A stretch of 64,000 bases of DNA from Ylistrum balloti. Taxonomy: Eukaryota. Shown here piece after piece: positions 61 to 25,940 of the stretch (positions within the stretch are counted from its first letter, which is position 1; every line of letters begins with the position of its first letter). The translations under genes and the position numbers were made by a program. The stretch is from the NCBI RefSeq assembly GCF_031769215.1, contig NW_026781893.1:558001-622000 (forward strand), given 5' to 3'. Under the pieces are notes generated by a model. That model saw only the letters and a program-made list of their open reading frames with translations. It had not been told where the DNA came from and ran no database searches.

Positions 61-3000
61 TTCCAGAAGGAATCAAGCAGCAATACAATGATAATATCAG
101 ATGGATTAAAGAGGCGAAAAACAACAAATTGGTACGACATTGCATGATACAAAACCATCAAACTACATAAATAAATCCAGCTATCTTGTTACGTAACAAA
201 TGTCTTACTAATTACTGACGGATGGCAATACCTTAGCTGTCTTTTTGCAATTTGCAAAACAGCGACTATATGAATTTGTATTTATAAGCAATTCACTATA
301 GATGTAAGCATGGTGATGATTTCATCTGGTAAAAAACCCATTCCATACAATAATGCAATCCCATTGTTAAAAGTAGTCCAAATATACTGAAAAGTGTTAT
401 GCATCGTCATATTATTTTAGGTTGTAGGATCACAGGCGAGAATTCTATATTCCGACCAAAAAGGTAGGATAGCGATTGCGACAGCCTTCAATGACGCAGT
501 GGCTGAGAGGAAACTAAAGGTATATATTTAATGTTTCATTTTTTTTCCCATTTGTAATATTCTGCCTTATATTACATGAAAAATAATACTTGTCGGTACA
601 TAGCTTTAATGAATGCATTCAAAAAAGGGAGAGGGCGTTTGGGGGTGGGGAAACAAAAACAAGTCACAGACAAAACAATATTCCTGTGTCCATGATACAA
701 ACGTTTAAGATTTCCACATAAAGCATGAAGTATTGATCATTCTGTGAATAGAAATATTAACGTGAATTAATAAGTTCAGATAACAATATAGTGTATGTTG
801 ACAGGGTCCAGTGGTGTTGAGTCGCGATCATCATGATGTCAGTGGTACAGACAGTCCATTCAGGGAAACATCCAACATTTATGACGGGTCAGCATTTACA
901 GCAGGTAATTTATTCTAAACAAACAGACCGCAACCGTTTCCCATTCTATTCGGTTGTGGTTCACATGCTGTGGCGATTGTGTGTTATATTTATATTTGAA
1001 ACTTTGCAAAGAGCAGGTTCAATTAAATGTTATAAATTCCAATTGATGACATACGTCATATTTTGCAAAATACATGAATATCCTTTATTCTAGCATGCTA
1101 ATGGCCTAATAAATATCTCGCCCACTTGTTTATTGTGAAATTTACACTAGACCCATGTGAGATGAAAAAGGGTTGATCTTTTGTACGTTTGAACTTTCAC
1201 CCCAGCTTGCTACTGGCCAAATGGCATGATCCTTTTTTCCATTTTTGTTCATGGTAAAGTCATTTCAAGCTGTTGATTTATTTCACTGCGGAAACCACGG
1301 AAAGGAGTAAAGGTAATTCCTTTGAAGAAACCTAAAACCCTTTACCTCAGCATGATACTGGTCGAGGATTTTTGGCTCATGTCCTTTCAGTTAATGAGAA
1401 GTCATTTAAAGAGAACGTGTAACATCGGACGGATCACGGACGGATCACTGACGGACTGGCGCCAAACCAAGGCAAAATCCATTGCTTACCCTGCAGGCTG
1501 GAAAAGCCTACATCACATGACAAACCAAAAAGTACAGATTTCTGTTCATGGATGTTTGGGATTTTTCATCAATGTCCCACACTGCCATTTGATTGCATGA
1601 TGTACATTATGAATTGATCTTCATATTTTGTATTTGATGAATGTGTAAAGATATATCGTGAAATATGTGTACAACGTGTACCAACGATTTATAGATTTAA
1701 TTGTCGTTTATGTTTTTTACAGACATGGCAGTTCAGAATGCAATCGGTGACGCATTCAGGGGAGCTACGTGGGTAGCTCTTCACAATGGAGGTGGTGTCG
1801 GCTGGTAAGTTAATTCAATGTAATATCACGGAAAGAAATAAAATCCCATTTACAGTTTTCACATGAATTGCTTTAAGTATGGAGTTTACGTATGCTGAAA
1901 GAAATTATGAGAAGCGTCATCTTTCAATGCATTCATGTGGTGATTTTATTTATGGCAAAATTTTCACTACTACATGCGAATTAAATTACGTCATGTCACT
2001 TAATAACAGGCTAATGGTTAAAACTGTGACGTCACAATAAACATTCACCAATGGGATGGTCTTCAATAAGACGATGTTAGCTGTATGATATGCTTCATTT
2101 GAATATATGTATATTTGTAAATTACCTAGAAATCTCACCTCCATGCGCTAAATAAAAATGATAACCGAAAAAGTCTTGTCATTGAATCCTTTCATAACCT
2201 TAGAAATACATGTACGAGACATCTTATTTATTACTTCCCAGTGTTCACACAAACAACTCATCCGGTTTTGAATACATATCCATAATAAACATTATTTTAT
2301 AATCTTCCTGAATTCAAAATTTCCAATTTTTACCTTTTCATGCTTCATGGTTTTCAATTCCCGTACTTTGGGAACACTTTCATTCCTTATTTTGTACGTA
2401 TTTTCAATTTTCAAATCATTATTAACCATTTGTCCGGTACATTATGTCTATGTAGCTGTGTTTAGAGAAAACTGTATTTCTATGTAATATAATCAGCGCT
2501 ATGGGCACTATCGGCACGTCGAAAACTGTCGTAATGATAACTACTCGTGTGTCCTCTATGATCTAAACATTACATATATCGATAACTAAAGATGTTACTT
2601 TCCTGCAGGGGCGAGGTGATCAATGGAGGGTTTGGTCTTGTGTTAGACGGATCAGAGGTAGGGAAGCACATTAACAAAACGATTACTTCTGTAACAGACG
2701 GATTAAATCTTATTTCATCTTTGAAATATTAGCAAGTTATTCCAGCTCATAATCAATGCAATGAGAGTAAAATATGAATAAAAGATAATACGTATGGGGA
2801 CCTTACTCATTATGGTAATTGTATTACAGTAGGTAAATATGAGACAAAATCTCCTGAATGATCATGAATTTCATTTCATTTTCACTTTACATGCTTATTT
2901 ACACCTCAGGAGGTTCGCCAACGGGCGGAGCGTATGCTGGCCTGGGACGTGTCGAACGGAGTAAGTATTCCCACAAGGAAAAACAAAAAGAATGGATTCT

Positions 3001-3412
3001 TGTAGTTGGATGAATGCGTCTCAGAAGTATCCTTACAAGGTCAAAGATGTGTATTTAGGGTGAATCCTCAAAAAGTCAAAGAATGGGCTGTCTAAATGTA
3101 AGTGACCTCATATGATCGAAGAACTGACATTTGTAATGAACCTCTACATAAGATGGAAACAGGTTTCGGGTAAAACTTGTTTCTCCCATCCAGCATAGAA
3201 TATAACGATGTATTTCAATTCCCAAAGCACTAGAAATTGCACTTTTGAAACTGTTTTACTCTTCGTAGGTAGCAAGACGGTGTTGGTCCGGAAATAATCG
3301 AGCACAGGAAACCATTTGTCGGATTATGGATGACAATCCAAAGTTGAAGGTCACATTACCGCACCATGTAGAAGACAAAACTATCCTTGATAAAGCTCTC
3401 GGCAACGCGTGA
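61..3412 (+). CDS. UROC1: Urocanate hydratase, 3' part (5' exons outside window). Exons 61-131, 421-519, 805-904, 1723-1804, 2609-2657, 2910-2960, 3269-3412
   Basis: All introns GT-AG with consistent phases. Spliced translation PEGIKQQYNDNIRWIKEAKNNKLVVGSQARILYSDQKGRIAIA...GPVVLSRDHHDVSGTDSPFRETSNIYDGSAFTADMAVQNAIGDAFRGATWVALHNGGGVGWGEVINGGFGLVLDG...WDVSNGVARRCWSGN...DKALGNA* matches the animal urocanase C-terminus. Confidence 0.97.
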
Positions 3413-3621
3413 CGTCATAGGCAATATGACAAAACAGTCCTTCAGAAAGAGTTTGCCTCCGTGTGATGTCGACGACATCTTGGTTCTTTTCCATAAAACC
3501 AATAAGACATTTGTTGCAATCGATGAAATCGCTCATTTCCTAATTACAAATAATGCATCCAGTTTGTAACACAATTGGCATTCAATGCAGGCACATCCTA
3601 TCAATTTTAACCAATATCCAC

Positions 3622-3945
3622 AACAAACAACTTCTAATACTCAACTCTGTACAGTGAGTTATGACCTGGATTACAGGTAGATCCCATTTTTTCTGCAAAA
3701 TTTGTCTAACCTGTCGAAGTTCATCTGAGAAAACTTTCAGTCAAATACCATGCTTCCTTGTCTTTTGGTAAGTCAGAAAAAGTCATTTAAAGGTTTTAAC
3801 GAATTTGACCCTTGTGACCATGAATATGGGCCAAGGTTATTGTGTTGGCTTATTTTTCAAACTTTATTAGACTTCATCTCAACAACCTACTAGCCAAATA
3901 TCATGACATTTGGTTTGCTGGTTATTTGGTCAAGTGAGCTAAAAA
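3622..3945. mobile_element. Degenerate non-autonomous Helentron-like (HINE-type) repeat
   Basis: Ends in GGTCAAGTGAGCTAAAAA (3928-3945). The internal TAAAGGTTTTAACGAATTTGACCCTTGTGACCATGAATATGGGCCAAGG aligns by eye with the element at 54430-55219. Family name from recalled bivalve repeat termini. Confidence 0.55.
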
Positions 3946-5254
3946 TTGGAATTAGACATGTAGATTGAAATAATGAATTAACTGTGTCAGCTGTTTCATC
4001 ATCTTGGACTAACCGAATGTAGTAAGGGCCTAAATTTTGAAACTTAACTGGTGCCCGAGTGATCAGAAGAAATTGTCAAAATATAGATGACAAGGTGCAA
4101 TTCTTGTCATGGTGTCCTCTTCAATTTTCTGCATTGTCCGTATAAAACATAATCATCAAAAAAAAGAAGTATTTTTTTTTATTAATAGGATATTTGCAAA
4201 TCCTGATTTCGTCGAGTCTTTCCCAAATGAAAAGCATTCATTAATTTTTTTACAGAAAAAAAAAAAAAAAAGAAAAACGGTACAGATTGTGTATGATGAC
4301 AGCATTTGGCCGCGGACAGGGAACTCCATATATCTATCTAGCCATTTCTTCATATATTTCTAAATTTCATAACTTGGTAAATACTTGCTAGTCTTGTTCA
4401 TCAAACACGAATTGGAAAAATAGAACAGCTTTCGTAAGGTATAGTATGTGTCGAAAAGATCTACAGCCTGTAGAATAAGAAAATACATGTATATATATAT
4501 ATATATATTCTCCAGCTTGCCCTTCTGAGGGGTTACAATGTCTGATACTATATCAATACCATATATGGAAATTTCTGCCAATTGTCTGTGGCAATGGGCA
4601 TCAAAACAATAGACATTTTGTAATCATATTCATACACTATGTAGTTATAGTAAACATATCACATCTTTTTTTAGTGGAAATATTATCAGGAAAGTTATAT
4701 CCAAAGAATTTTATAAAAAAAAATGAAAGGGAAATCGTTGAAGTTGGAAAGATCATGATTACATATGGTATGAGAAAATTTGCAATATAACTGATAACAA
4801 TATTTAAAAGAAATTTTGATAGCTGCCTGGATAAACAGACCTCAAGTATAAAAATCATGATTTATGTGACCTAACAAACACTAACCATGGCATTGCTGAT
4901 ATAGATGAGAGCACATGATAGCTTTGTATTAACAGGGACAAGACACTGTTTAATAGTAGCTGTTCATGATATGTAGGGATAACTATTCATCGATACATAA
5001 TTTCATTATTTTCAAACATGAATAGTAAGGTGTTCCTTTACAGCAAGCGAAGTAATAAATATCATATAAACTGTGTCAACTTACTTCCCTTTGAAACAGT
5101 AATTGTACTTCTATTCTAACGACATGCTTAATAATAAACTGATATATTTAACTTTTTAATTCAATCAATATCATTATTTTGGGTTTCAGATGTATTCATT
5201 CAAAAACATACTCTGTTCCTGATCATTTGATATTACTTTAATCTGGTGAAACCA

Positions 5255-8200
5255 TCATCTGTTCTGCTGTCCTGGGGTGGCGGTCTTTCTAAAAGCATTG
5301 AAATGTTCCAAGTACTGGTTGATAGTATCTGCTGGGGTATACAGAGAGTCCATTTTATTTTTGATATATGATGGTGGCATATCGGCTGCATTACCCACAA
5401 TGCTCTGTAAAAGTTCTTTCATCATGTTCCAACAATCACTTGGAACTTGACAAGGACAATATTCAACCTGAAATAAAGCAAATATTTTTGTCGGAAAATG
5501 TCAAAACTTATCAAAATTACATTAAATCATAACTGCACTGTAATAATTTAATTTTTTTATAAATTAAAGTAGTAATGGACTTCTTGTCTTGGAAAAACAA
5601 AAAAAATATGTTCTGGAACAGATGATCACTGTTTATGATTTTATCCCCAACTTGCATAATTCTATTGACGAGAGATATTTTTGCAAAATCACTATGCCTG
5701 TGTTGATGGTGTTGGAATTATTTGTTTATGAGACAATATAAATACATATGTATATATTGGTTTAACACATACACGTATGTTAAAAAAGTATAAATTATAC
5801 TAATAAAGTCTATACATTTACCACAGATCATTTAATTATTTTAGCAGAAAGGTTTTTAAATAAAGCCATGAAGCTTACCTCTATCAGCACTCCTTTGAAG
5901 TTTGCCACAAGGGACACAGAACCAATCTTAATGACAAAGTCGGCCAACTCATAACGCTGGCCGCGAGATTCTATTTTGAAACCTTTCCTCTGTTGGAAGA
6001 ATGCTTCACGTCCTGACTTAGCCTGAGTCATTGTGTTCATAATTAAGTCAAAGAGCATATCCGACACTAACACAGTCCCCGTGTCCAGGACAGAAAAGCA
6101 AGTTGCTGGCTGCTCACTGTTGTGTAAGATGTGAATGGACCTTTGCTGAGCTGCCAGAAAAAAAAAATTCTTTTTTTTTTTTTCAAAAATATCAACCAAT
6201 ATTAACCTAATCCCATTTCTTTTAAATGTATACAATTAAATGAAAGTAGATCTAGGAGGAAAGCTAAAATCATTCTATCTTATTATTATAGGTTTATAAT
6301 ACTGTTGGACACCATATGACACAAAACTACTCACTACAATCATTACTGGTATGTTAAAATCAAATTAAATTTGTAAAAACCATGAGATGCTACCTTGTGA
6401 CATATACAGCATCCTGAAAAAGTGAATGTCACAAAGGAATTTGTTTTGCTGTAGAAAGACAATTTTTATCACATCAATTAATTGGGTATATTACCGTTTT
6501 GAGCATGAGACTGGTAAGTTTCACAATCCACACAGAAATTGCCTGTCTTGGTCGCACCAATTACCTCCATCTGTTTTTGTAGACCGTCCACTACCTGCTG
6601 TCCACTCTTACCTTCAGGTATGTTGTATGCATAAACACTGCAATACACATATACATGTTTAACAGTAGTATACAAGTAAAATTTCAGTTAAATAAAGAAA
6701 ACTCATATGGATAGACTAGAAACTGTTGACAATTGCACAGTAAAGATGACTAAATAAGGTGAACTTTGATAAAAATTCCTCCCTGAATTGGCCATTAGAG
6801 AGCTGACATAGGATTTCTAGACCCAGTATCGATGACCTTGACCCTTGAGATCTAATCCTGAAACTAACTTCTACATGATATTGTGGTCCTTTATATAAAT
6901 GCGAAGCTTGGTCAAAATCCATTGAAATTGCTGGAGTGCTGACAAGGATTTATGTTGACCTTGACATTGCAACCCATCTAACATCAATTTTCCAAGATGC
7001 CATGCTCCTCCATAAAATGTGAAGTCTGATCAATCTATTTTGAAAAATGAAGCTGTTTTCTTGAGGAATGAAGCTGCTGAGTGCCGACAAGGATTTTCTT
7101 AAAATAGATACAATGACCTTGACCCTACAACTTTGAGACTTTAAATCATTCAAAATGTAACGCTCTTTACTCAGTGTATGATATTTTATCAAAATCCATC
7201 AAGAAATTAATTAAGCCATTTGTGCATTAACACGGTTTTTCTATAATTAGTAACAGTAACACTGACCCTACAATCTACATAAACTTGTCCAAGGTAATTA
7301 TAAGTTCATAGTTTTCATATTTTATCAAACTTCCTCAAAAAAAATTCTTCTGAACTTACAACTCACTGGTGTAGGTCTTACAAGTATGCGTTATTGAAAG
7401 TCATGAATTTAAGTCAAATGCTTATAAAACAAGAATATCAGTGAAGCTGATGATTGCTTCCCAAATACAAATAATTGGACACAGAATTTCAATTATGGGT
7501 AATAACTTTGAAATCAAAGGGTTTCCGCCCCTGAAATTGGTACACTGTACATCCTCTTAGTATGATCAATGTATATACCAACTGTCATTATGCTAGTTTA
7601 AACGAGAGCAAGTTATGCTCTAGGCACCAATTTTTAATTATGGACAATAACTCCTATCATAATCCTTTCTTGACTGTTTATTTTATGTTTCAGACACTAA
7701 AGGATAGATAGAGAGATGGATAGACAAAAATAGTGGATAATATATGCTCCAAAGAAATATTTCTGGAAGCATGAAAATAACTAGATATGATAGAATTTGC
7801 TAACAAACTGAGATATCTTTATAATTTGGAAATAAAATTACCCCAAAATATGCTGTCTACATTTTACACTAATTGATACACCTTACCACTTTATCATGAG
7901 ATGCAAAAGTTCAGTCAGTTGCACAACCTTGGATAAAGATCAAAGAAGCATGATACAATTAATATTTCCTATCCATGGTAGTTTATTTCCCAGAGCTGAG
8001 AAATTAACTTTACTGTGTTGCATCCTAAGGCAAGCACCCTCCCACATGTTGCTCAGTGAGGGTGTCACCAGCTACTACATACTCACAGACCCCACCTCAA
8101 AATCACCCTGGCTGTACATTATCACTTGGTGATAAACCCAAACAATTATACCACTGTTCTATCTTGCCATTTATTACAACAAAACTTTTTGCAGAAAAGT

Positions 8201-9434
8201 ATGCTTAATGGTTAATTAACTGTAAACAAATAACATGTATTTAATTTTTTGTCCACAAATGAAGTTTATAACATAGATGTAAGTGCCTTTGCTCTGTTAT
8301 TGTGTGATGTGAATTTGCCATTTGTTGTGATTATATATTATAATATATATCACATAACAAAAAATCTCTGTAATATGAAGATGTACAGGATTTCCAGTGT
8401 AACCTCACAAAACCAAGGCTGTTCCCAAAATTTTCTTTATAACATCAGAGTATACATTGTACTGTTTTACAGCTGTTAGTACTTTGTTATATTCCTGTGG
8501 TTCACAGACACTTCCTTATGCTCTTAAGAATATCAATATAAAAATATTATTCCACAACAGATATTAATGGTAATTACATGGTAATTTCATAAAGAGAAAA
8601 CGAGCTCTCTGACACCACAAGCACCAAAATCAGAGACCAGACAGAATCACATTCCTTCCCATATTTATTGCCTTTATGTTTGATGATCCAAAGCTTGAAA
8701 GTAATAAGTAACAAATCAATATGCAGAATTGTATTTTGTTCTATTTTTGTGAGAGTGAGAAAAGTATTCTTTTCTGATAAAGAGTAACCTGCCTTATATG
8801 AATACAAACGTGTTACGAAAATTGCTGTGGAGCAACCTATATCTCATTTTAATTTGATAACATTGAGTTACACAGCTAAATTCAATGATACCATAATGTG
8901 TGCGTGATTTTCTTATTAATTTGAGGGGGACTTTTGTAAATTTCAATAATATTTTACATTCGAACTATATACATTACAAGATACCTTGTGTGATTTTGAT
9001 TTACATTGTGAGCAAATATCCTGTTATCGGAGGTGCAATTTATGATCTACTTGTAATTATCATTATCAAGCAAACATTAGTGTGATGTATGTGAGAAAAT
9101 CGAGTCTCATATAATCAATCAAGGCCTAATTACACCTTTGGATTTACATCAATACATCGACGAGGGATAAAACTAATGTAATTTGCTTTGTTTATGCAAG
9201 GATTTCTGTCCGGGACCTCTGCCCGATTCAGTGATTAAATGCTGCGCTCGTTTATGGTTTTGCGCCCATATATATATATGTGATCAGAAACCGGTGTATA
9301 GTGAAAGTAGAAGTACTTTAATGTAGTCACCCCCAGCTCCATGATATTCACACAGCCGTGCGACTTTATGTGTAAATATGTTTGATTTAAACGATCAGAG
9401 CAAATCACCCTGTTTCTTACCAGACGACACCCAT
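5255..9434 (-). CDS. MED20: Mediator subunit 20, 213 aa. Exons 9434-9421, 6637-6495, 6150-5879, 5467-5255
   Basis: GT-AG introns with consistent phases, 642 nt total. MGVVCVYAYNIPEGKSGQQVVDGLQKQMEVIGATKTGNFCVDCETY...HILHNSEQPATCF...KIESRGQRYELADFVIKIGSV...VEYCPCQVPSDCWNMMKELLQS...YTPADTINQYLEHFNAFRK matches MED20 motifs (FCVDCETY, VEYxPC, PADT). Confidence 0.96.
6716..7260. repeat. Degenerate interspersed repeat with GACCTTGACC-type internal units in MED20 intron 1
   Basis: Recurring GACCTTGACC(C), CAAAATCCAT and GTGCTGACAAGGATTT motifs (about 6830, 6910-6965, 7080-7125, 7190). Confidence 0.45.
7420..7780. mobile_element. Degenerate HINE/Helentron-like fragment
   Basis: Begins AAAACAAGAATATC; has a GATA/GACA-type microsatellite (about 7700-7725) followed by a decayed hairpin and AAAAT end, the usual layout of these elements. 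Confidence 0.35.
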
Positions 9435-17707: not shown

Positions 17708-18589
17708 GCTGTTTGTGAAAGCGCCTCACAAACTGCGAGGATGAGAAAGTGATCAAGATCGACCAAACGTTTCGTTGGACATTAACTAGTACGAGTATTC
17801 TCCCTTCGTTCGACAAACATTTAAGACATTACGAAGAGATCTACAAATTAATATGATAAATACATCGGAAATGAGTTTTCATTTTTACAAACTTCACGAG
17901 CAAAAATTAAATCTTTTTGCAGAGTTTCATAAAAAAAAAATCTATTTGAATTGGAAAAACAAAACTCAGAAAAGTTAACGATGCATCCCAACAGAACTAC
18001 ATTTAAATATCTACCTCAATTTTCCATATCGGGTCTGTCCCTTTGTACACACTGAGAAAATTGAATCCCTTTAACCCAACCATGCCTATTGATTAGAAAC
18101 CAATCTTTGGGCCAAATCCACTCAGCGTCTCAATTTGTGAATGTTTAAGGAAATTACTAAAACCTATTGAAATATTACTTGGACTTTTACTCAAAGTGTG
18201 TGCGGGTTTTATCTTAATCAAAAATTGATTTCTTTCTGAAAGTTTCCAAAAGAAATAGCTCCTTCGAGTTCTTATTTCTAAGCACAAATGATGGTGCAAT
18301 TGTGCTTTTTTATGCTTCCAGGTAATCTTGGACCATTTCATTCTACATATTTTCGTACGCATAACTCTCCGTAAAGAGCCTCTTTCCGCAGTGTTCCAGA
18401 CCTCTATTTTAATTCTCCTTCGTGTATAGGTCGAGGGAGAGAAAGAGTAAAAATCATAATTTGGTTTTCATGGAACAATGGAATAATGTTTCAATAGTTT
18501 TACTTAATTTCTTTACTTTTTTTTGTGGTGGTGGTGGTGGAGGTGTAGGGGGATTCGATTATAAATGTTAAGGGTTTGACTTTCGACGG

Positions 18590-19217
18590 ACATACTACAT
18601 AATCCCCTTCAGTATCTATACTCTTTTGCCAGCGATGCATAAGGGCCGCAATGCTACTTTTAAGGAAGTCGTTTTTTCCACCGTTCAGAAAATCAACCAC
18701 TGCATATTTGACGTCATCATCTGACCAAATGTAGATACCGGAAATGATCTTTTTTAGTTTTGGACATAATGAAGATCTAATGGATCCACACCACGTAATG
18801 TCCTGTTGGAACAGCACACCTGATTTTTGTCCCGTTTGCAGATTATCTACCACCAGAATACCACCAGCATTCCAGAAAACTGAGGAGATATGTAATGTAT
18901 GGAAATGTACTCTTTCCAGTGAAACCCTAATTGTGCTGGTTATATATCTCTCTGCAACTCGCCGGTCAGCCATAACAATATCATGGACTTTATTGACCAT
19001 TTCGGGGGTTGCAAGTGAGACAGTCCTTCAAGGACGGGTGTCATCCCTAAAGTTCTGCCTGTCACGCTTAAATTCCGCCACCCACCTTTTCACTGTAGCA
19101 TATGAAGGGGCATCTTTCCCTAGCGTTGCTACCATATCAGTATTATGAAATGCTAGACCTTTTTTTATGCAAATATTGAATCACTGCTCTTTCAGCGTTT
19201 TTTTTTTTTTTTTTCAT
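18590..19217 (-). mobile_element. Mariner (Tc1/mariner) transposase relic, internally deleted
   Basis: RAVIQYLHKK..., MVATLGKDAPSYATVKRWVAEFKR, VHDIVMADRRV, VFWNAGGILVVD, LFQQD, PKLKKIISG, SDDDVKYAV, LMHRWQKSIDTEGDYV. Contains a stop, frameshifts and large missing blocks; TIRs not recognised. Confidence 0.85.
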
Positions 19218-19555: not shown

Positions 19556-20538
19556 AATGTCATGCAGGTTGTACAAATATTTACTGTCAGCAAATGAGAT
19601 TTACGACGAACTTTCACCACAATTTCCATCTCACAACTCTTTACTACAACTAGTAAGATCTTCAGGTAAGAAAAGCATTTACCGTCATAACACATACTAA
19701 ATCAAATAAGTAAACCGTTTGTTGACAAAGGAGGATTCGAAAAGTAAAACCATATACAAACAAAAGAATGCGGTGTGGCAATATTGTCTGACAGTAAATA
19801 ATACAATTAGGTTTTACTCAAAACGAATTCAACAAAAATAATATCACATGCTACGAGTGATGTACGAGACAACAGTCTACAAGCAATAATAATAATAATA
19901 ATAATAATAAAAAACCCAATATCAACCAAAAATGTCAAACCAACCGTCTCAAAACAAAAATATTCCAATTCCGGGATGACAGAATAAGTGAATCAGTAGT
20001 GAAGAGTTTGATCAGTACCGAAGTGAGAATAAACTGTCATTAATCTTACGTTCATTTTATCCGATATAAGTATATAAGACATCAGGCATGCTGCCACGTG
20101 ACCATTAAATTGACACGACTTTAATATCTAAATAACTGATGTTTTTGTCATAACAATATTAATACTGCTTTCCCCTATCTAACTGATGTTTATTTTGACA
20201 GCTTATCTACATTGCAGTTACTTATAAATATTGGAAACAAGACATGTCATTGTGTCCAAAGTGAGATGCCATTCGTCGCAGATCATAAGGAATATGCGTG
20301 GATATATTAAGGCTTAAAGTGTTAGTGTATCGTTTTATAAGATTTAAATAAGAAAGACATTAGCACCTAAATAAGAAAATGTCGAAAACCGCATGTAAAT
20401 TGATTCACTACGACCGATGATATGGCCTGTCAATCATCCCAGTTTGCACCTGACTGGTAAAGCCAATCAGAGTGTAGCGGATATGTGTGTAGTGTAGTGC
20501 ACATGAAATCGTGACGTCACAAGGTGAACACATTCAAC

Positions 20539-22286
20539 ATGGATGCCTACAGCGATAGTGGAAGCGATGGGACAGAAGACTCACAATCAGATTGCGACCT
20601 TCATATGGGATACTCTTCTTCTGATTTTGAAGTGGAGCATTCTGAAGGTATTCGACCTTATCGTTTTGAGCCAGAGCTAGGAAGTGACGACGATGAAGAA
20701 AGCGGCAATCCGCCATCGGCAATCGAGGACCGCTTGGGCTCAACCGAATGGTACGTAGACCTATATTAAGGCCCAATATAAGAATACCTTGATACTTACG
20801 GCCTTTTAATGGCCAAAGTATTTTTATTGAGCCTTAAAATTTTCGTTAAACGGAACCGTCAACTTTGCCTTCATGTATATTATAACATAACTTAACCAGG
20901 CAACATAAAACTATATCGCTGGACGAGTAATCTCGTCACTACGAACTTGGTCGGCTTGCCCATAAAGGATATGCGATGTTGTTAACCTAACATCTATACT
21001 GAGTATATATTTTTCCATCTATAAATTATCAGTTATTATTATATTAATTATTCTGTCAATAAGAATATATATAGGCCTGATCTCAATCTCTACAAAATAT
21101 GTTATTGTGTACCAATGGTAATGTTGTTTGGTGAGTTTTGTAGGGAAAATATCCAGAGCATCTTGACAGAGGAAGTTGTATCTGCTCAAAAATAAATATT
21201 AAAATCCATCTACACCATTTGAAAACTACTAAATTCTGCTTGGAGCAAATAAGTTAACTAGGAAGTAAACACAGATTAGACTTCAGAGCAGCATGGAGAA
21301 GCTGCAAAACCACTTGGGACAAACACAGATTATGTTTTAGTGTTTTTTTGTTATATTTAATCCTTCACAAGGACAAATCAACTTTATTTCATATAAATAT
21401 TCCTGTTGACAAAATATCCTTTGACTGATGTGATGAACACATGAAATAACACCTAGAATATCTAATAAAAAAAATAAGGGCAATCCAAAAAATCAGTATT
21501 TCTGGGAATTTATTTGGTTTTAGAGTAGAACTACTCTGTAACAAATATAACTTTCAATACCAAACAACTTTCAATAACAAATGCAATTTCCAATAACAAT
21601 CTCTAACAATGCTTATGCGTTAAACATAATTCAGAATGACTATTTTACAGGTGCAAATGTGAAAACTGTCGAGAGATGCCAACAGTCCCTGAAAGTATTT
21701 GTTGCACTGAAATTGCACAGATCCAACACATCAAGAATGAGTTTCCACACCTGAACTGCATCACACAGCACCCTGGATTTCCTTCTGTTTGCCTAGATGT
21801 GTATGTGTTGCGTACAGCATATCAAGCCTTTAGACAGTACCATAATGGCAACATACCCGATGGTCCAGCGTAAGTAATAGCTATCCATTGAATGTTACAT
21901 GTATATGATGTGAAATATCATACAGAGATTTGTGATTATCTGACAATTTGTTTGTTTTTCCCCTTATAAAACCTCATCTATTATTGGACTTTTGCAGTAA
22001 GAATACCAAACAAGTTCAAGTGCTGAGACTGAAAGACACCTGTGAATTATAATTTATTATAATTTATAATACCAAAATGAAAACATGACAATGCATCTGT
22101 ATTTCTTGTTTATCTTTTTTCAGGCGAAACCGCTACACTGCCTACCGACAGTTTGTCCGATGGTGCTGGGGTTTTCTGGGGCGAAATGTACGAGTCCCAC
22201 TTCCAGCATGTGCTGTAAATCTCATACGACAGACATTCCCGCCTGGTGATGGTGAAGAATTGAGGGGTTTCAATTATGGAGACTGA
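20539..22286 (+). CDS. KolX / P2X7 intracellular-ballast-like Cys-rich protein, 197 aa, intact. Exons 20539-20750, 21651-21869, 22124-22286
   Basis: Acidic N-terminus, then PYRFEP...WCKCENCREMPTVPESICCTE...CITQHPGFPSVCLDVYVL...RNRYTAYRQFVRWCWGFLGRNVRVPLPACAVNLIRQTFP...GF. GT-AG introns, consistent phases, no stops. Confidence 0.88.
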
Positions 22287-22317
22287 ATGAAAAGTATGGT
22301 TTTGTGAATGACTAGTT

Positions 22318-23214
22318 TCAAGCGAAACGGGATTGGACTGATGACACAGCTTCTAGTTTTGAAGGCCGTTCAAAGGTGCTGCATAGTGCTGGAGGTGCAT
22401 CCATCAGGACATCTTGTGTTTTAGTCATTCTGGTGTTTGTTGCCTTGTTGACTGTTATTTGTAGCAGCTCTTGAACGTAATCTGTCATTAAAAAAAGAAG
22501 ACATTTCAATGGATTGTTGCCTTTAATTTATGTGTAGTGCCGGTCACTGCCGGTGTCATGCATAATATGTAGCCCCCGACCAAAATGTAATCGGATACTT
22601 TTTATTCCTACATAAAACATACCCCCATTGCTTAAAAGGTAACCCCCTACCCAAAATCTTCAATTTTATTTTTTTTCCCAAACTGAATAGTGAAGTTATG
22701 AAAAATGACCCAGGGGTTCCCACGATTTAGTATACTTACCGAAAGTTGGCTCCATTTTCACTTCACGGACTGTGTATTCTCCTTTCTTGTGTTTGGGATA
22801 CACAATGTTGTAACAAGTGTTACCATCTTTGGTGACTGCTGGGTCCCTGCCTCCATTTTCATTGTAATGAAGGACACCGAGTAGAAGTCTGCAATATAAA
22901 CAAGAAAATGCCGTCTGTATGGTGGGGATAGCGTCGGCATTGAGAACCTTCTTCTTGGGGGGAGTTTGACCCATGGATCGAAGAATGGCGTATTTCATAG
23001 GATATGACCCATCTTCGAAGTGTTTTTCACACAGAGCCGAGTACGTTGTTGGACCGTCCCACTTGTCTCTTTTCTTTTGTACAAAATTTGTCCACATCTT
23101 ACACAGATCGGCATTAGTAGGGAATAAATGAAGGGCAAACCCATCGCCGTACTTTGTTGAACACCCGTATGCCACACACCTCTTACCTACACTTCGTTTC
23201 CTATTTTCGCTCAT
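22318..23214 (-). CDS. Truncated transposase: THAP zinc finger fused in frame to the transposase C-terminus, DDE core missing, 212 aa. Exons 23214-22740 and 22481-22318
   Basis: THAP signature RCVAYGC...LHLFP...W...LCEKHF...DAIPTI is followed by RLLLGVLHYNENGGR...YPKHKKGEYTVR and a spliced tail DYVQELL...PPALCSTFERPSKLEAVSSVQSRFA*. Expression unknown. Confidence 0.75.
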
Positions 23215-23699
23215 TGCGAAACCTCGTAAAGTCTCAACGTTGTCCTCGATTATCTGTTGTCCCCAATTAAACAAATTATACACCAGATCCACTGTCAAAC
23301 ACGAAATAAAATCATTCGGTCGCTTCAGTTGTATGTAAATAAATATGGCTGACTCGCGTACCCGCGGTATATGTGTTCACCTTGTGACGTCACAGATCTG
23401 TGTGTACTCAAAACGGGGTCAATGCCCAATCCGTACAGGTGTGTTTTTCAAACAACGTTAAATATCTCGATGAGTATTTATTTTTCAGAGTTCGTTCTTG
23501 CTGTAGCTATCTTATAATTTTAAAAGGATTTTAAATATATTAAAAAACAATAGCAGTGCACTATCTCTTTAAGCCAAACAAAATCACGTGAGTTGTTTCC
23601 AAATTCAAGATAACAACTTCAAGGTTATCACAAGGCTATTCTGTAAGGAAATACAACACTTTAAATAGTTCGATGATATACTGGTCTATCGATTGTTCA

Positions 23700-25128: not shown

Positions 25129-25940
25129 GGTAAAAAGTGGGGATTTACCTATCTGGAAATAAGAGACGAGGAAATCTCACACCGGTAAAAAGCGGGGATT
25201 TACCTATCCGGGATAGGAGACAAGGAAATCTCACACCGATAAAAATCGGGGATTTACCTATCTGGGATAAGAGACAAGGACATCTCACACCGGTAAAAAG
25301 CGGGGATTTACCTGTCCGGGGTAAGAGACGAGGAAATCTCACGTCGGTAAAAAGCGGGGATTTACCTATCCGGGATAGGAGACAAGGAAATCTCACACCG
25401 GTAAAAAGCGGGGATTTACCTATCTGGGATAAGAGACGAGGAAATCTCACACCGGTAAAAAGCGGGGATTTACCTGTCCGGGATAAGAGACGAGGAAATC
25501 TCACATCGGTAAAAAGCGGGGATTTACCTGTCCGGTATAGGAGACGAGGAAATATCACATCGGCAAAAAGCGGGGATTTACCTGTCCGGGATAAGAGACA
25601 AGGAAATCTCACACCGGTAATAAGCAGGGATTTACTTATCTGGGATAAGAGACAAGGACTTCTCACACCGGTAAAAAGCGTGGATTTACCTGTCCAAGGT
25701 AAGAGACAAGGAAATCTCAAACCGGTTGAAAACGGGGATTTACCTATCCGGGATAAGAGACGAGGAAATCTCACACCAGTAAAAAGCGGGATTTTACCTA
25801 TCCGGGATCAGAGAAAAGGAAATCTCACGTCGGTAAAACGTGGGAATTTACCTATCCAATATAAGACGAGGTTATCTCACACCAGTTAAAAGCGGGGATT
25901 TACCTGTTCAGGGTAAGAGACAAAGAAATCTCACGCCGGT
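25129..25940. repeat. Minisatellite, 54-bp unit x15
   Basis: Consensus GGTAAAAAGCGGGGATTTACCTATCCGGGATAAGAGACGAGGAAATCTCACACC; 812 bp is 15 units. Confidence 0.95.

Follow-up and report, generated by a model that had tools for sequence, protein, structure and literature searches.

Origin of an open THAP–tail reading frame in an internally deleted Kolobok transposon of Ylistrum balloti

Does a transposon copy of the scallop Ylistrum balloti that has lost its catalytic core encode a repressor of its own family, or is its reading frame the leftover of a recent deletion? The question is raised by a stretch of 64,000 nucleotides (contig NW_026781893.1, positions 558,001 to 622,000, assembly GCF_031769215.1), hereafter the window, to which all coordinates refer unless another sequence is named. 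On its minus strand, the original prediction had seen a THAP DNA-binding domain joined in frame, through the remnant of an intron, to the C-terminus of a Kolobok transposase without its DDE core, and had proposed a regulator resembling the KP protein. Some repressors are encoded by small non-autonomous P elements themselves; the 207-aa KP protein is one, and it uses its THAP domain to bind P DNA (PMC7776569) and, according to references cited in that review, dimerises. Both KP and the window copy are internally deleted, non-autonomous derivatives of THAP-transposase elements in which the DNA-binding domain is kept and the catalytic core is gone. Competition by catalytically dead Kolobok proteins is also already in print for Xenopus, where transposon suppression by competitive binding was proposed for DDE-less proteins (PMC6004289). 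Applied to the window, such a reading says that a 212-aa protein made from the element's own promoter would bind sub-terminal THAP sites and lower transposition or transcription, either in competition with the full transposase or because its conserved tail poisons the transposase assemblies.

The statements of the original prediction about the gene itself all hold. The start codon lies at 23214-23212 (minus strand), the AIPTI motif forms residues 95-99, and the product has 212 aa. The first coding exon (22740-23214, minus strand), whose frame is open from the ATG and whose translation is identical to residues 1-158 of the database record P0001, is a fusion of the THAP exon, 20 nt of intron and the former second-last exon (E8). 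Its THAP zinc-finger domain (residues 13-99, positions 22918-23178, minus strand), with AIPTI at the end, matches Pfam PF05485 at an E value of 2e-13 over profile positions 1-86 of 87. It carries CVAYGC...CEKH and AIPTIQ, the C2CH, P/W/F and AVPTIF-box hallmarks of THAP domains, and the string PPKKKV stands just before its end. The predicted intron remnant was found at 22914-22888 as ACGGCATTTTCTTGTTTATATTGCAG followed by A, with its AG at 22890-22889, and it reads T-A-F-S-C-L-Y-C-R without a stop. By comparison with a full-length copy (L014:6267-6287), the intron preceding E8 contributes 22889-22908 (minus strand), its 3' end with pyrimidine tract and AG, and this remnant now encodes F-S-C-L-Y-C and the first two bases of R109. 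After AIPTIQTA the sequence thus reads TTTTCTTGTTTATATTGCAG and A, and the open frame continues into LLLGVLHYNENGGRD...EPTF.

The last intron is retained (22482-22739, minus strand, GT..AG), with the donor G/GT at 22740/22739 and the acceptor AG at 22483-22482. Its placement rests on exon blocks that are collinear with the homologue P0176 and on an intron-free homologue, P0002, which reads straight across the boundary; the NCBI model uses the same splice. Frame and homologue comparison define the last coding exon (E9, 22318-22481, minus strand), which ends in the stop codon at 22320-22318. The NCBI model LOC132550582, an uncharacterized protein of Ylistrum balloti (P0001), agrees with the 212 aa at every residue. 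A donor-like site, GTAG/GTAAGA, is present at 23190-23181 (minus strand), and a splice from 23187/23186 to 22888, with 28 nt upstream, would shift the frame. Judging from the sequence, such a splice is unlikely, since the same site lies in the THAP code of all full copies, where homologues read through it, and since the deletion took away the branch site that natively serves the 22889 acceptor. A natural splice isoform joining exon 1 to exon 8 was also considered as the source of the THAP::tail arrangement and was rejected, as the donor AGG/GTACGT is in phase 0 and the acceptor in phase 2.

The absence of the DDE core was confirmed. About residues 103-659 of the 765-aa homologue P0176 are removed and, with them, both D residues, the DxxH motif, the H2CH zinc finger and the catalytic E, whereas the THAP domain (1-102 on the P0176 scale) and the last ~103 residues are kept. 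This tail corresponds to the extreme C-terminus of transposases of 660-830 aa, in which H, N, N, G, PKxKxG and Y are nearly invariant. Its fold, predicted for the tail alone with 71 homologues (pLDDT 87.8, pTM 0.56), comprises a long helix, a hairpin and four helices; intron letters encode the first turns of the long helix in the fusion. Neither a Foldseek comparison of the model with the PDB (E <= 0.001) nor a search of the tail exons against Pfam gave a match. The tail is nevertheless a real conserved C-terminal module of Kolobok transposases. The complete THAP domain and the conserved, confidently folded tail count in favour of a repressor; against it, the tail matches no known fold and carries a private Ala to Val change at a conserved position.

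Where does this gene come from? A search of the 648-Mb genome of Y. balloti itself finds the region in two pieces, each with 100% identity at other loci, where 4.36 kb separates them. Alignment to three full-length copies (on C1023, C792 and C984; 99.4-100% identical) established a real internal deletion of 4,356 bp. BLAST against the full copies places the junction, GGCA/TTTT, at 22908-22909 (minus strand), with 1 nt of microhomology, the shared nucleotide being A. The left breakpoint lies inside exon 1, after GACGGCA, and the right one precedes the acceptor of the second-last exon by 20 nt; a likely branch site, CTGAT, read from the sequence at -24, falls in the deleted part. Compared with C1023 by BLAST, the window copy shows this deletion and one substitution in 3,251 bp. 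The substitution, at 22874 (minus strand), is the sole base differing from the full copy and changes Ala to Val in the conserved LLLGALH; every contig of three other sequencing runs has G (plus strand) at this position. Because only one base differs from the full copy, the open frame of the window copy is explained by its youth, and selection is not needed to account for it.

The full element measures 7,607 bp (C1023, L014:1252-8858; also C792 and C984) and contains two genes, a THAP transposase and KolX, which in this family are convergent, with stop codons 31 bp apart. The transposase gene of the full copy has nine coding blocks, collinear with animal proteins of 715-828 aa such as the 765-aa P0176 of Solemya velum. 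Published descriptions characterise Kolobok elements by TTAA duplications, RR..YY ends, DDE and C/DxxH motifs, an H2CH-type finger before the last E and a THAP domain (PMC9587614, PMC6004289). The 5'-RR...YY-3' termini separate them from piggyBac, and a second gene, KolX, with a P2X7 cytoplasmic-ballast domain is the mark of the Kol0 lineage, the Kolobok-1_XT type (PMC9587614). In the Y. balloti family, TTAA stands beside every 3' end and beside all but one of the eight distinct 5' ends, and the termini are 5'-AGAG...CACT-3' in the window copy and all family copies, in agreement with the RR..YY pattern. The best full-length copy, C1023, has TCAA rather than TTAA at its 5' end (L014:1248-1251), and its 3' flank lies past the end of the contig. 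The motifs of the transposase, read by eye against the published descriptions in the full copy L014 and not in the window copy, are GDGRCDTPGHS (in the CxxC..CxxC stretch), IVTDRH, DVWH, NHIQNIHEGHGKKFPKCLH, SELEGYHS and the conserved tail. The H2CH finger is in exon 6, before the catalytic E, as described in PMC9587614; since it sits in that exon, it is wholly absent from the window copy. Against Pfam, the transposase gave weak matches to the related MULE and Mutator models only, below their cut-offs. Taken from its motifs, its ends and its second gene, the parent is a Kolobok of the Kol0 lineage, which bears out the family named in the original prediction and narrows it. With the Kol0 elements of Kojima and Bao (2022, PMC9587614) it shares TTAA, RR..YY ends, DDE with DxxH, the finger before the last E and KolX; unlike the intact elements of that lineage, the window copy is without the whole catalytic part. 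No name for the Y. balloti parent family was found in the literature consulted.

The window copy occupies 20318-23568 (minus strand; 3,251 bp by BLAST against full copies) and has the termini 5'-AG...CT-3'. The TTAA target-site duplications lie at 23569-23572 on the 5' side and 20314-20317 on the 3' side, as recognised from empty-site contigs and the flanks of family copies, and the target site of the insertion is GGCTTAAGCC. The 5' terminal inverted repeat, AGAGATAGTGCACTGC (23553-23568, minus strand), matches the 3' end, AGTGTTAGTGTATCG, imperfectly, and the 3' terminal inverted repeat, delimited by comparison with family copies, covers 20318-20333 (plus strand). Written in full, the element ends are 5'-AGAGATAGTGCACTGC...CGATACACTAACACT-3' with TTAA on both sides. 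Two other features of the window were observed in passing. Open reading frames on both strands at 18500-19148 probably belong to another transposon remnant, since the beginning of the minus-strand frame resembles the N-terminus of a mariner-type transposase. A tandem array of ~750 bp at 25137-25889, open on both strands and made of GNLTPVKSGDLP-like units, looks like a minisatellite and not like a gene.

In a family of such high identity, the junction could in principle be the work of the assembler, which may have fused two partial copies of a repeat with 99.9% identity, and the contigs of other runs, which all continue into full-length sequence at 22909, would fit that explanation. However, both ends of the window copy belong to one insertion, since they have a common TTAA duplication and since their flanks join perfectly in empty-site contigs. 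The breakpoints have a single nucleotide in common, which makes the junction impossible by repeat collapse, and the private substitution lies 35 nt away from it. We therefore hold an artefact to be very improbable.

The in-frame outcome was compared with that of random breakpoint pairs of the same class. Such pairs give a stop-free, in-frame fusion in 2.8% of cases, and in 13.7% when the right breakpoint is placed in the last 60 nt of the intron. An in-frame result is uncommon but within chance, and it is not remarkable given that this copy was picked out for being in frame. That 3-14% of random pairs of this class read through in frame is in keeping with a neutral deletion derivative.

An 81-nt probe for the junction matches fully at the window only in the 648-Mb assembly; elsewhere one half of it matches. 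In three other DNA runs, which represent two organism labels and two studies, a contig joins 20313 to 23569 with four shared letters at the depth of the flanks, that is, the site is empty. In these same runs, the contigs that reach 22909 continue there, in either direction, as full-length element, and none bridges the junction. An empty site in each of three other DNA samples means that the window insertion is private or rare. As to expression, no RNA run containing the junction sequence is on record among the public runs, and a small run that looks like cDNA (X6) covers the THAP exon down to 22924 only and nothing of E8. Contig data of this sort are compatible with a low-frequency insertion or with undetected transcripts. 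The observation that the original prediction had itself named as speaking against a regulator, a junction both unique and untranscribed, was thus made in its first half, the uniqueness. A word search of 5.8 billion proteins found one exact match to the 212 aa, LOC132550582, in a cluster with one member from one contig, and no Logan or other assembly beyond its own contig encodes the exact protein. In runs X1 and X3, the element interior has ~10x the word depth of the single-copy flanks, with contigs 99-100% identical to the window; depth being a rough guide, a young family with some ten copies in each genome would give such values.

A unique junction, a site that is empty in three other samples and the lack of an RNA run with the junction are all expected of a neutral remnant. 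They are harder to reconcile with a repressor, as a single private copy with 3/3 empty sites elsewhere is the opposite of the spread of KP, and no junction transcript was found among the public runs. On the other hand, the frame is complete, the THAP domain is intact and NCBI calls a gene here, which counts against a purely neutral account. The 660 bp upstream, including the putative promoter, are also the same in the window copy and in the full copies, which makes it likely that expression of the family would extend to this copy. This 5' region, identical to that of active-looking copies, and the complete THAP domain likewise speak for a repressor.

The second gene of the window copy is intact. 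KolX, similar to the P2X7 ballast domain and convergent with the THAP gene, lies at 20539-22286 (plus strand) with exons 20539-20750, 21651-21869 and 22124-22286 encoding ~197 aa, as judged from checked frames and Pfam. Its third exon matches PF20478 (P2RX7_C) with 29.3 bits, the cut-off being 23.5. The second begins with W-CKCENC...CC, a W-C-x-C-x2-C...CC motif, for which the Pfam match is weak (E 1) and a search of PDB sequences gave a weak irrelevant match only. Run X6 contains a GT..AG joint from 20749 to 21650 (+1) in which the first KolX intron is spliced out. The stop codons of KolX and the THAP gene (22286 and 22318) are 31 bp apart, and a contig of X6 (22127-22458) spans both 3' ends; the two transcripts therefore probably overlap as natural antisense.

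If the protein were made, it would bind whatever sites the THAP domain of the family binds. A repeat search revealed a sub-terminal inverted repeat of 38 nt, 82% complementary and containing TGACGTCA, at 23371-23408 upstream of the THAP gene, with its partner at 20496-20533, on the upstream side of KolX. Conservation between this young family and an older deleted one is ~90-95% in the non-coding first 300 bp and last 225 bp (~80% overall), and the 38-nt repeat is also conserved in the older family. From their position and conservation, the sub-terminal regions with the TGACGTCA repeat are the obvious candidate THAP binding sites, and the repeats may act as a promoter module common to both genes or as one that the transposase binds. 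The TGACGTCA core is CRE-like and lies upstream of both inward-facing genes. A similar repeat pair, TGACGTAA, occurs at matching relative places in a short element of the soft coral Xenia (L025:5915-5931 and 8311-8327).

Is the window copy alone in its genome? Another young copy, on C10 (L021; G000:C10:838.6-842.8 kb), has a different internal deletion, of element positions 2796-6178, through which most of the transposase is lost and KolX lacks its 3' part. The older deleted family consists of TTAA-flanked copies of 3.3-3.7 kb (L016-L020, on C734, C202, C645 and, twice, C316) that have two deletions in common and retain element coordinates 4-1135, 1823-1937 and 5377-7613. As these copies are 85-94% alike, the family was amplified after its deletion. 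The THAP frame is broken by frameshifts in three of its four independent copies, and its non-coding ends are much better conserved than its interior. The two copies on C316 (L019 and L020, at ~555.2-558.9 kb and 563.5-567.0 kb of G000:C316) are 99.4% alike, have identical flanks and lie ~8 kb apart in opposite orientation; they are a local inverted duplication of host DNA and not two insertions. Other independent deletions in the genome, and an older deleted family that decays by frameshifts, are in keeping with a neutral origin of the window copy. The decay of the older relatives speaks against a repressor.

Short proteins of this type are also found in other species. An exhaustive HMMER search with the 212-aa protein, carried out through the record P0001 (Pfam searches were done exon by exon), gave 1,836 matches at E <= 0.001. 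Among the best 150 of these, 17 have both THAP and tail, 11 of them short (247-572 aa). The 248-aa XP_021341179.1 of Mizuhopecten yessoensis ('THAP domain-containing protein 3-like') sits in an element of 4.4 kb, and a 269-aa family of Xenia sp. (LOC124458281 and others) has at least four intact loci in an element of 2.8 kb. In both cases the element is flanked by TTAA, has AG..CT ends and holds, beside the short frame, a convergent P2RX7_C gene, that is, KolX. Between the Xenia copies there are 3-7 residue differences, and additional members are truncated.

In the alignment, each short THAP+tail protein has a different internal gap. The breakpoints of Mizuhopecten, which keeps E1, E2, E8 and E9, differ from those of the window copy, and so does the Xenia protein, which keeps half of THAP, the zinc finger, the E-bearing exon and the tail. 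Since the breakpoints differ and the short proteins are only 35-43% identical to that of the window, the three deletions are independent events in different Kolobok families. Internal deletions always keep both ends of the gene because the gene spans the element and its ends adjoin those needed for movement. The recurrence is therefore expected from random internal deletions, whose in-frame survivors are then reported by gene finders, and the different gaps are in line with a neutral origin. That short two-gene elements with THAP::tail and KolX recur in Mizuhopecten and Xenia is, however, a point against dismissing them all as neutral, and mini-elements in two other species are what a repressor reading would welcome. 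Recurring mini-elements may carry an advantage, although recurrence does not require one.

Another possibility is that the frame is a fixed host regulator derived from a Kolobok, since NCBI annotates a gene and DDE-less Kolobok genes were domesticated in Xenopus (PMC6004289). The scallop frame and the Xenopus proteins are alike in being Kolobok-derived, in keeping THAP and in lacking the catalytic residues. However, the Xenopus genes are single-copy, syntenic between species, of full length and under a dN/dS below 1, having lost DDE by point changes (PMC6004289), whereas the scallop frame results from a fresh deletion inside a mobile copy. This copy has intact TIRs and TSDs, is 99.97% identical to mobile copies and is absent from three other samples, and no orthologue of the 212-aa protein was found in the 5.8-billion-protein collection. 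Domestication is thus an extremely improbable explanation.

Two readings are left to be weighed. We put the probability at about 0.7 that the window copy arose very recently by deletion from an active Kol0 Kolobok and is neutral and non-autonomous, and we take its leftover frame, with good though not overwhelming confidence, to be accidental. Elements of this kind usually decay through internal deletions of this sort. In the course of events that we propose, an element of 7.6 kb with a THAP-DDE transposase and KolX lost 4,356 bp, from exon 1 to the 3' end of the seventh intron, presumably by end joining or interrupted gap repair after excision, as the microhomology of 1 nt suggests. With the exon 1 donor lost, the first exon now runs through 20 nt of intron into exon 8, in frame by chance. 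A transcript, if made, would read through the junction, because the exon 1 donor and the probable branch site of the 22889 acceptor are both gone. With both ends kept, the copy could be moved in trans by an apparently intact transposase of the C1023 type. Should the retained promoter be active, the 212-aa protein would be produced, and the family's THAP sites could become occupied by this by-product.

The KP precedent (PMC7776569) and the idea raised for the DDE-less Kolobok proteins of Xenopus (PMC6004289) lend some appeal to the stronger claim of repression. Nevertheless, the likeness to KP is limited. KP keeps the coiled coil beside its THAP domain, binds several P sites and represses in vitro and in vivo, and it has spread to many copies and populations, whereas the window copy is a single private one. 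In P and KP, the dimerising coiled coil lies in the region that follows THAP, and this region is deleted here; the window frame has lost this linker and has the C-terminal tail fused in its place, while KP keeps the segment after THAP. The superfamilies also differ, with 4-bp TTAA duplications in Kolobok and 8-bp duplications in P. We consider a repressor of the KP type to be unlikely, although less so than the artefact or domestication. Of the original prediction, an internally deleted Kolobok with full THAP and tail and no DDE core stands; its status as a regulator finds no support in a unique junction, three empty sites, no RNA run, a one-contig protein and a one-base difference from the full copies. 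That the protein damps the Kol0 family in trans, and that the recurrence of mini-elements in two scallops, Y. balloti and Mizuhopecten, and a soft coral reflects a general, self-limiting circuit of the KP type in Kolobok, is more doubtful still.

From a biological perspective, the family is active and polymorphic in Y. balloti, as shown by a private insertion, by several deletions that arose independently and by full copies that are nearly identical. For annotation, the value of the finding is that LOC132550582 is a transposon remnant and not a host THAP gene. An experimental demonstration of Kolobok regulation was not found in the literature consulted. If true, repression by the window protein would extend self-regulation of the KP type to a second THAP-bearing superfamily, as the first such repressor outside the P superfamily, and a repressing protein would give a simple two-plasmid test system for Kolobok.
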